Shown here: piece after piece, positions 36,201-39,200 of the stretch
How the letters are laid out: each line of letters starts with the position of its first letter
How positions within the stretch are numbered: the stretch's first letter is position 1
Assembly (NCBI GenBank): GCA_002104945.1
Contig: MCFH01000017.1
Span: 248,001-312,000, forward strand
Length of the DNA stretch: 64,000 nucleotides
Direction: 5' to 3'
Origin: Piromyces finnis finn
Taxonomy: Eukaryota; Fungi; Neocallimastigomycota
Translations under genes and position numbers: made by a program
The notes under the pieces: model-generated
Seen by the model: only the letters and a program-made list of their open reading frames with translations
What the model was told of the DNA's origin: nothing
The model's database searches: none

Positions 36201-39200
36201 TTCCTCTAATGATGGTGAATATTTTGAACAAGATCCTATTAAGGCACGTAAGAAAAAGAATAGAGCTTTTGAATTAGATCCAAAATTAAAAACAATAGAT
36301 ATTCCAAATTGTCTTTCTTCCCTTGAAAATATAGACACTAATAATTTCTTAGATTGTACCAAATTATCCTCTCCAATATTTAATATGGACTGTGTTTCGA
36401 TGCCTGCTTTAAATAAGGATAAAGAAAATGAAGAAAAAAATGATACCGTTGGGGAAATAAATATTAATCTTTCCATGAGAAGTACTCGTAATAAGAGACA
36501 AAGTACATTATCAAGTTGTACTGTCACTAGTGTAAATAGTTATAACAGTAGAAGTTATACAGAAGAAGAAGATATTCATTTTGAAAATAATGAAAAATGT
36601 AAATATAAAATTTTTTATGTTTTTTTTTATCATAAATAATAATAATAATCTTTGTATGATGATAATTATTTTTTGAATGACTAATAATATCATATATAAA
36701 AAATTTTTTTGATATAATGATATAATAATATATTTTCTTACATTTTAATAGATGCCAGTACCATGAATAGTATATATTGTGCAACACCTGAAAGACTTAT
36801 AGAATGTATTTGGGCTGGAGAAGAAACTCCAGGTATAAAAAATTTATTATAGTTAACAATATCATTATTCCTATCACCATTATTATTATTATTATTAATA
36901 TGGATTATTTTAAAAAATATCATTTTAATTTCTATTTATTTCTATTTTATATAATAGATAATGAGTTTTTAGATACTCTTATTTATACCTATAGACATTT
37001 TACCAATTCAGATTATATTATAGATAAATTAATAGCAAAATATCCTTTATATTATATATTTTATTAAGTATTTTTTTCTTTAAAAAAAAAAAAGATTATT
37101 TTTTCCCTTAACTTTTTTTTTTTATTTTGTTGTTTATACATTCCAAGAAAAACTTCCAAGTAATTCAAATTCATTCCAAGAAGAAGATTTCTTACTATGG
37201 AAACCTATTATTATGATACGTATTGCATATTATATAAAGAGATGGTTAACTATATGTTCTATAGATTTTAGAGTAGTTTCTGTTAGATTAAAATTAGATT
37301 CATTTATAAATATGCTATCAAATATTTCAGTGTTTGAAAATGGTGAACCATTATATTCTTATATGCTCTATAAGGATTTATCCTCTTTACAAAAATTATT
37401 CTCAAGATTTTCTAATGAAATGGTAAAATCACTTTAAATATATATATATATATAAATAGTTTGAGGGGAAAAAATAAAAATATATCACTATTTAATTTTA
37501 TAGATTGTATCTATTCTCATAGCAATAATTTTAATATTGTTTTATTTTGATATCAATTATTATCCTTTTTTATATTATTATTATTTTTTCTTTTTTTTTT
37601 TTAAAAAAAAAAAGTTAAGTTATATTGATTTATCAACAAAAATTGAAAGTCCAATGGATAAATCAAAATTACCAGAATTTATTAATTTAGATCCTACTGC
37701 TGTAGCCTACAAATTAACAGCTATTGAATCAGAACAATTCCAAAATATTAAACCAATAGAGTTTATCTTAAATCTTTGGAATACAAATGATCAATCACCT
37801 TATATTCAACATGAAATGGAAAATCTTAAAAAGATGGTTGAGGCCTCAAATCATGTAAGTTTACATAACATTTTATACCTATACCTATTTATATATTATA
37901 TATTTTTTAAATAAAATTGTTTTTTTTCTCTTATTCTTTATAATGATTTAACAATAATTTATATAATTAATTAATATGAAAAATGCTATCAAAAAAATAA
38001 TAGCTAAGTTATTGGGTTATTACTGAAATTCTAACTCAAAGAGAACTAAAGCCTAGAGTTAAAGTTTTAGAAATGTTTATTAAAATAGCTCATGTAAATA
38101 ATTTTTTTTATCATTCCTTATTTCATTTATTCATATTATTTCTTTTTAAAGAAAATGAAAATTACAATCATTAATTTAATATTTTTCTTTATTTTTTTTT
38201 TTTAAATTCTTTTTTTTTTTTTAAAAAAAATAGATTTGTAAAAAAATAAACAACTATCAAACCTTGTTTTCAATTTGCTCTGGTTTAAGTCATTCACAAG
38301 TTACAAGATTAAAGATGACTTGGGAGGTATATCATCAATAAATTTTTTATTAGCTATCGAACCTTAAATTTAAATTATAATATATATATATTTATTAATT
38401 ATATTATTGCTACTGTTCTATTTGTTTATTCATTCATATCATTACCGATATCATTACTATAATTAATTTATTAATTATTTCATTTCAAAAAAAAAAAAAA
38501 AAAAAAAAAAAAAAGAATATTCAACCAAAATACAAAAATAGATTTAATGAGTTAGAAAGAATCACCTCAATTGCTCGTAATTATAATACTTATCGTCAAA
38601 TTCATGCCAGCTTATTAGAAAAGGATAAAATACCTCACAATATATTCCATTTATTGCCCTACTTATTAAAGATATATACTTTTTCAATGATGGTAATCCA
38701 AAATACATTGATGAATCCAAATTACGAAGTATGAAAAATGAAGAAAATAATAATAATGAAACCACTTCTTTACCAGGAAATGATAATTCTTCCGGTACCA
38801 ATACGATCAATCCGTTTGATTCTACAAGTAAAGAAGGATACCCTATTTTAAGTACAAGTGCTAAATCCGATAATGATGCTATTTCTTTCCTGACCACATC
38901 TACTTCAAACAATTCTATAGCTCAAGATTTTGGATTAGAATCTATTAATGAAATAGAATCAACCATGTCTAAATTTGATAAGGAGGATGGTATGCTTACA
39001 TGTAATTATAGTATTGGCGAAGAAGATAATGCGAATAATGGGGATAATGGTGATAATAATGGTGATAATAATGGTGATAATAATGGTGATATGATTGAGA
39101 ATAATATTTATGAATGTAAATCGGAAGGTGAATTTCCAATGGATTATCAACCCGATGAGGATATTGAAAAACTTACAAATAAAGTATTATCAGTAGAATC

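Follow-up and report, generated by a model that had tools for sequence, protein, structure and literature searches.

The stretch analysed here (the window) comprises 64,000 nucleotides (nt) of the genome of the anaerobic gut fungus Piromyces finnis (assembly GCA_002104945.1, contig MCFH01000017.1, positions 248,001 to 312,000 of the forward strand) and has a G+C content of 19.6%. It carries a RasGEF gene, encoding an N-terminal region, a REM domain and a CDC25-type exchange domain, whose REM domain is interrupted at positions 37040-37139 by an AT-AC intron that is very probably of the U12 type. A full-length orthologue of 1242 amino acids (aa), P0002, aligns collinearly by tblastn over 33234-39465, and the N-terminal region has a PH-like part, judged by eye only. 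After removal of the intron the frame reads ...CIWAGEETPDNEFLDTLIYTYRHFTNSDYIIDKLIAK|FQEKLPSNSNSFQEEDFLLWKPIIMIRIAYYIKRWL... (DYIIDKLIAK|FQEKLPSN) and is continuous with both RasGEF_N and RasGEF. The intron falls near position 49 of the RasGEF_N profile, directly behind the L-I-x-K of the REM helix. The exon segment 36960-37037 matches positions 24-47 of the Pfam RasGEF_N model with 18.6 bits, a value under the whole-protein cut-off because the query comprised only 26 aa, a later exon matches the Pfam RasGEF model with 24.2 bits, above the cut-off, and the full-length orthologues have both domains. A preliminary description, made from the letters of the window alone, had assigned the intron to a RasGEF gene and, within it, to the REM domain, and the spliced frame, which gives a normal REM domain, together with the two Pfam families agrees with this assignment.

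The upstream exon ends with GAT AAA TTA ATA GCA AA, and ATATCCTTT begins at the next base; the intron ends with TTTATAC and is followed by ATTCCAAG, in frame with the open reading frame (ORF) at 37213. Contigs assembled from four RNA runs belonging to three studies, one contig of 2.7-3.5 kb per run, match 36956-37039 and then 37140-37426. The positions on the two sides of the junction are adjacent in every record (1446/1447 in run X1, 2197/2198 in X2, 2179/2180 in X3 and 2196/2197 in X4), and therefore the 100 nt between 37039 and 37140 are absent from the transcript. The transcripts carry the junction GCAAA^ATTCC, and the intron is constitutively spliced out in the available transcriptomes. 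Of the words sampled from 36700-38000, the same four runs contain a fraction of about 0.4, the value that exons alone would give. The junction is missing from the automated table of joints solely because 37068-37138 is flagged as a repeat.

Retention of the intron leads to a stop codon TAA at 37065-37067, just 5' of the first GT at 37068, and the corresponding ORF spans 36804..37067. Both borders of the intron carry AT, and the mRNA alone fits equally well with cuts shifted by +1 or +2. In a paralogue of Neocallimastix californiae (L012), where the borders read ...AAA|ATATCC...CTAC|GTTCC, only the AT-AC cut is possible; these unambiguous borders and the transcript junction together fix the cut as AT..AC. 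The preliminary description had given exactly these borders, had noted that a TAA precedes any GT on read-through, and had named the junction after GCAAA as the feature to look for in RNA; each of these statements holds. It had also described the other introns as GT-AG, which is true of the six further introns of this gene that are removed in the same contigs, all of them GT..AG once aligner slop is resolved. Another GT-AG intron of the gene, 35558-36010, contains an (ATT)n microsatellite (35664-35875, about 210 nt).

Two sequence elements of U12-type introns are present. The 5' splice site matches the U12-type consensus RTATCCTT(T) in full, and a branch-point box, CCCTTAAC, forms part of the longer string TTCCCTTAAC at 37103-37112. 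Both elements, the donor and the CCTTAAC core, had been pointed out in the preliminary description, and both are conserved across six orthologous or paralogous introns. According to Turunen et al. 2013 (PMC3584512), U12-type introns are defined by their 5' splice site and branch-point sequences. Among the copies of RTATCCTT in the window, only the one at 37040 is followed within 700 nt by a branch-like box, and only this copy stands at a verified, conserved splice site. The overlapping donor and branch strings RTATCCTTAAC occur on the reverse strand at 9562-9572 and 43834-43844, without a branch-like box downstream.

Table 1. Features of the RasGEF gene in the window and the orthologous AT-AC introns of other anaerobic gut fungi.
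Feature	Position in the window	Strand	Length (nt)	Branch-point box	Branch A to last nt (nt)	Remarks
RasGEF gene, whole coding span	33234..39498	+				About 13 exons; N-terminal region, REM, CDC25-type RasGEF domain
GT-AG introns, verified	36599-36751, 36833-36957, 37423-37614	+				RNA contigs
GT-AG introns, verified	37855-38003, 38094-38233, 38327-38515	+				RNA contigs
Exon, REM core	36958..37039	+				Encodes (D)NEFLDTLIYTYRHFTNSDYIIDKLIA(K); in transcript contigs of four runs
AT-AC intron, P. finnis	37040..37139	+	100	CCCTTAAC	28	Phase 2 (Lys codon split AA|A); 88% A+T; absent from transcript contigs
5' splice site ATATCCTTT	37040..37048	+				Full match to U12-type consensus
Branch-point box	37105..37112	+		CCCTTAAC		7/8 match to TCCTTAAC; presumed branch A 37110 or 37111
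Spacer, then 3' splice site	37113..37139	+	27			78% T; terminal AC is the first AC/AG
Exon, second half of REM	37140..37422	+				(K)FQEKLPSNSNSF...FSRFSNEM; 78% identical to P0001 and P0002
False GT..AG intron of BCR36DRAFT_445740	36833..37147	+				No transcript support
A4 run, A5 in transcripts	38627..38630	+				A inserted behind 38626 in the contigs of all four runs
Intron, L003-L008			120	TCCTTAAC	18	One species, several metagenomes
Intron, L009			126	TCCTTAAC	23	Logan contig of SRR8491975
Intron, L010			140	TCCTTAAC	33	Anaeromyces robustus, GCA_002104895.1
Intron, L002			131	TCCATAAC	43	N. californiae copy a
Intron, L012			180	ACCTTAAC	18	N. californiae copy b

Relatives of the gene were found by searching with the exon 37140-37422, and prokaryote-style short ORF calls led to the genomic contigs. 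The intron of the window and those of five other genomic loci all lie in phase 2 within the same Lys codon, and each begins with ATATCCTTT and ends with AC. All nine donor bases are invariant in these six introns and the intron bodies are unalignable; the donors of two flanking GT-AG introns vary beyond the first two or three bases. The branch-point box of the five complete orthologous introns has the form [ACT]CC[TA]TAAC. In a gapped scaffold of Piromyces sp. E2 (KZ151102.1, L016) only the 3' part of the intron is found, with TCCTTAAC and a 31-nt spacer ending in AC, so that all seven loci have a TCCTTAAC-like box, which is exact in four of them (L003, L009, L010 and L016). The spliced form AAA|TTT is found in a transcript contig of A. 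robustus (L011) and a matching junction in a metatranscript (L001). K|FQEK is read across the junction by the annotated proteins P0001, P0008 and P0009 and by the product P0002 of that metatranscript. The intron has very probably been inherited at this codon throughout Neocallimastigomycota. In the N. californiae locus L002 a run of 34 T (3964-3997) separates the branch box from the 3' splice site, so that the box is pushed to 43 nt from the acceptor; the annotated protein P0001 of this species still reads across the junction.

The public annotation of P. finnis presents this single gene as three models, the first ending at 35576, the next covering 36022-38734 and the last 38731-39646, and the alignment of P0002 runs across all three. 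The middle model, BCR36DRAFT_445740 (P0013), is reproduced exactly by the exons 36022-36598, 36752-36832, 37148-37422, 37615-37854, 38004-38093, 38234-38326 and 38516-38734. The public record of this model belongs to MCFH01000017.1, and the 5713 bases compared with it, window positions 34522-40234, are identical. The model forces a GT-AG intron that takes in the exon for the REM core, all of the AT-AC intron and the first 8 nt of the exon after it. Its protein lacks DNEFLDTLIYTYRHFTNSDYIIDKLIAKFQ, a deletion of 30 REM-domain residues, and its precomputed Pfam matches include no RasGEF_N. Damage of this kind from annotation restricted to GT-AG introns had been foreseen in the preliminary description, and the skipped exon 36958-37039 is its outcome.

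A further defect lies at the A4 run. The additional A of the transcripts lets the frame read the conserved IPFIALLIKDIYFFNDGNP motif, and the tblastn alignment changes frame at this place. Without that A the frame shifts just before the IPFIALLIKD...GNP motif, BCR36DRAFT_445740 ends early in a shifted tail and the third model starts at 38731; the A4 of the assembly is probably a homopolymer error. The filing of the gene as three fragments, with 30 REM-domain residues gone from the middle one, comes about because the AT-AC intron is not modelled, on top of this probable one-base assembly error. An equivalent mistake is found in the Piromyces sp. E2 model P0014, whose acceptor is the corresponding AG before AAAAACTTCC and which is devoid of the same REM exons. 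Its scaffold is heavily gapped and apparently mis-ordered over the gene, and the exons of P0014 are strung together non-collinearly. For the N. californiae and A. robustus orthologues the annotation is correct.

Several observations weigh against the assignment to the U12 type or speak for a rival reading, in which the major (U2-dependent) spliceosome removes the intron and TATCC and CCTTAAC are chance strings of a genome rich in A+T. AT-AC introns of the U2 type are known (Sheth 2006; Wu and Krainer 1997), and those of the latter source share with the P. finnis intron the AT-AC termini, a pyrimidine-rich 3' region and a more distant branch point. RTATCCTT occurs nine times in the window against 7.9 expected, which is chance level, GTAT-type donors are common in the gene, and the ATAT start is one change away from a local U2 donor. 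From the branch-point box to the 3' splice site there are 28 nt in P. finnis and 18-43 nt in its orthologues, distances within the U2 range; the reported U12 optimum is 11-13 nt (PMC3584512). The long T-rich spacer resembles a polypyrimidine tract of U2-type introns, a tract that classical U12 introns lack (PMC3584512); T makes up 59-90% of the spacers across the seven loci, but the genome has 80% A+T and T runs are everywhere. The P. finnis box has one mismatch, two orthologues have a different one, and an Rfam scan of the window, which covered the window only, gave no small nuclear RNA (snRNA) or other family.

Against removal by the major spliceosome stands the conservation of the signals. 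The donors of U2-type AT-AC introns are U2-like except at +1 (Sheth 2006), whereas the CCTTT at +5 to +9 does not change among the six diverged introns of the present family, at positions where the flanking GT-AG introns vary. The TCCTTAAC-like box persists in the seven loci despite differing positions and unalignable surroundings. The U2-type introns of Wu and Krainer have an ATAAGT-type donor and no TCCTTAAC box, and the P. finnis intron has a full U12 donor and a box, both conserved; minor splicing is, moreover, reported for P. finnis by Larue and Roy (2023). Use of the major spliceosome is, on this evidence, very unlikely. An artefactual junction, produced by template switching of the reverse transcriptase at a short AT repeat or by an assembly error, is barely credible. 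The 2-nt AT repeat shared by the borders, which makes the cut formally ambiguous, would suit such an origin, as would the use of assembled contigs from runs whose RNA nature was guessed ('RNA?'). The identical junction, however, is found in four runs of three studies, in contigs that also remove six GT-AG introns, and it restores an open, conserved REM frame. Matching junctions occur in A. robustus transcripts, in a metatranscript and in annotated N. californiae proteins, and the borders of L012 have no repeat.

The preliminary description had also suggested that this signalling gene may be rate-limited by minor splicing. On such a reading, which is compatible with the U12-type assignment, the intron would be a slow, regulated step, retained at times, that throttles the output of the RasGEF. 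Such a role would accord with the description of animal U12 introns as slowly spliced regulators (PMC4615840) and with the minor introns of human RASGRP and Rap-GEF genes (PMC6865273), and run X3 is slightly deeper over 37044-37147, with a depth of 10 where about 4 would be expected. The excess depth of X3 comes from a second contig, 95-99% alike, which continues into unrelated sequence. The intron is absent from all four transcript contigs, and words drawn from the intron and its two borders matched DNA runs only, so neither the assembled transcripts of the four runs nor this search gives any sign of retention; the evidence consists of assembled contigs rather than reads, in which rare isoforms and retention are invisible, a limit that holds for the U12-type reading too. 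Larue and Roy argue against a general regulatory role in fungi. A throttling function is improbable, though less so than removal by the major spliceosome. The second X3 contig accounts for about 6 depth units in 37044-37147 and 38708-38811, followed by 255 letters that do not occur in the window, and probably represents either the transcript of a RasGEF paralogue or a match due to low complexity.

We conclude, with a probability of about 0.9, that 37040-37139 is a genuine U12-type spliceosomal intron of the AT-AC subtype in the REM domain of this RasGEF gene. The U12-type assignment is well supported, because the orthologues keep ATATCCTTT, a TCCTTAAC-like box and the AC end while the body diverges, a comparison made at the level of sequence. 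A short branch distance is a characteristic and not a defining motif of the class (PMC3584512); the distance in P. finnis is outside the optimum, is treated as a probable variant of the lineage, and membership in the class is kept because both defining motifs are present. Removal would be carried out by the minor spliceosome, with its U11, U12, U4atac and U6atac snRNAs. The invariant ATATCCTTT would be recognised by U11 and later by U6atac, U12 would base-pair with the CCCTTAAC box and bulge the branch adenosine, presumably 37110 or 37111, and the first AC 3' of the box, 28 nt away across the T-rich spacer, would serve as the 3' splice site.

The preliminary description had attributed a functional minor spliceosome to the organism, in agreement with Larue and Roy (2023), who report both minor introns and minor snRNAs in P. 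finnis; a working minor spliceosome in this fungus is therefore already published there. The survey concerns the same organism and the same kind of intron, and the N. californiae and A. robustus orthologues of the intron sit in public annotations of the sort that such surveys use. The P. finnis intron itself is probably absent from their list for this species, because the survey classifies annotated introns and BCR36DRAFT_445740 skips this one. The intron is thus of a kind known in the species, and what is new is an unannotated instance, a wrong public model and a distal branch box.

Compared with classical AT-AC introns of the U12 type, known from animals and plants (Hall and Padgett 1994; PMC3584512), the P. 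finnis intron is alike in the AT-AC termini, in ATATCCTTT, in the TCCTTAAC-type box near the 3' end, in the non-zero phase and in having its position and signals strongly conserved from species to species; it differs in the 28-nt branch distance and the T-rich spacer. Minor introns are found in all four human RASGRP genes, RASGRP1-4 (100%), and in 71% of the Rap-GEF genes (Baumgartner et al. 2019, PMC6865273), and these include the AT-AA intron of RASGRP4 and the AT-AG intron of RAPGEFL1 (Sheth et al. 2006). The human and the fungal genes alike encode REM and CDC25-type exchange factors of the Ras family and carry a U12-type intron that starts with AT. Among animal proteins RAPGEF5 matches the fungal orthologue best, and BLAST gives a poor alignment of the REM domains. 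Of the distant homologues, P0011 and P0012 were examined for deep conservation of the position; each is a single ORF with no intron.

The spacers between branch box and 3' splice site measure 17, 17, 22, 27, 31, 32 and 42 nt in the seven loci, and all seven lack AC and AG ahead of the AC in use. From the density of AC and AG in the intron bodies, spacers free of both would arise by chance with a pooled P of about 0.009, a rough value that treats the loci as independent. The absence of earlier AC or AG is consistent with a choice of whichever AC comes first 3' of the branch box. A hairpin bringing branch point and acceptor closer together was considered and rejected as a conserved feature after folding against shuffled sequences. 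In the P. finnis intron an A12:U12 stem is possible whose loop contains the branch box (z -0.78), only the A. robustus intron folds better than its shuffled versions (z -2.16), and the four other orthologues show nothing. Tentatively, and with somewhat less than even confidence, the minor spliceosome of Neocallimastigomycota may relax the short branch rule in general, accepting boxes 20-40 nt or more upstream with T-rich spacers that lack AC and AG, and taking whichever AC or AG comes first as the 3' splice site, in a U2-like scanning mode; the family of seven loci, with spacers of 17-42 nt, would be one instance.

Surveys of minor introns that are built on annotations will undercount in the P. 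finnis genome. The present case adds a conserved, transcript-verified minor intron that is common to at least four to five anaerobic gut fungi. Its host belongs to the REM-CDC25 exchange factors, a family whose animal members are rich in minor introns, and a conserved intron in such a family is therefore a usable marker for whether the position predates the split between fungi and animals. The long, variable, T-rich spacer free of AC and AG may be a small hint of relaxed 3' splice-site choice by the minor spliceosome in this lineage.

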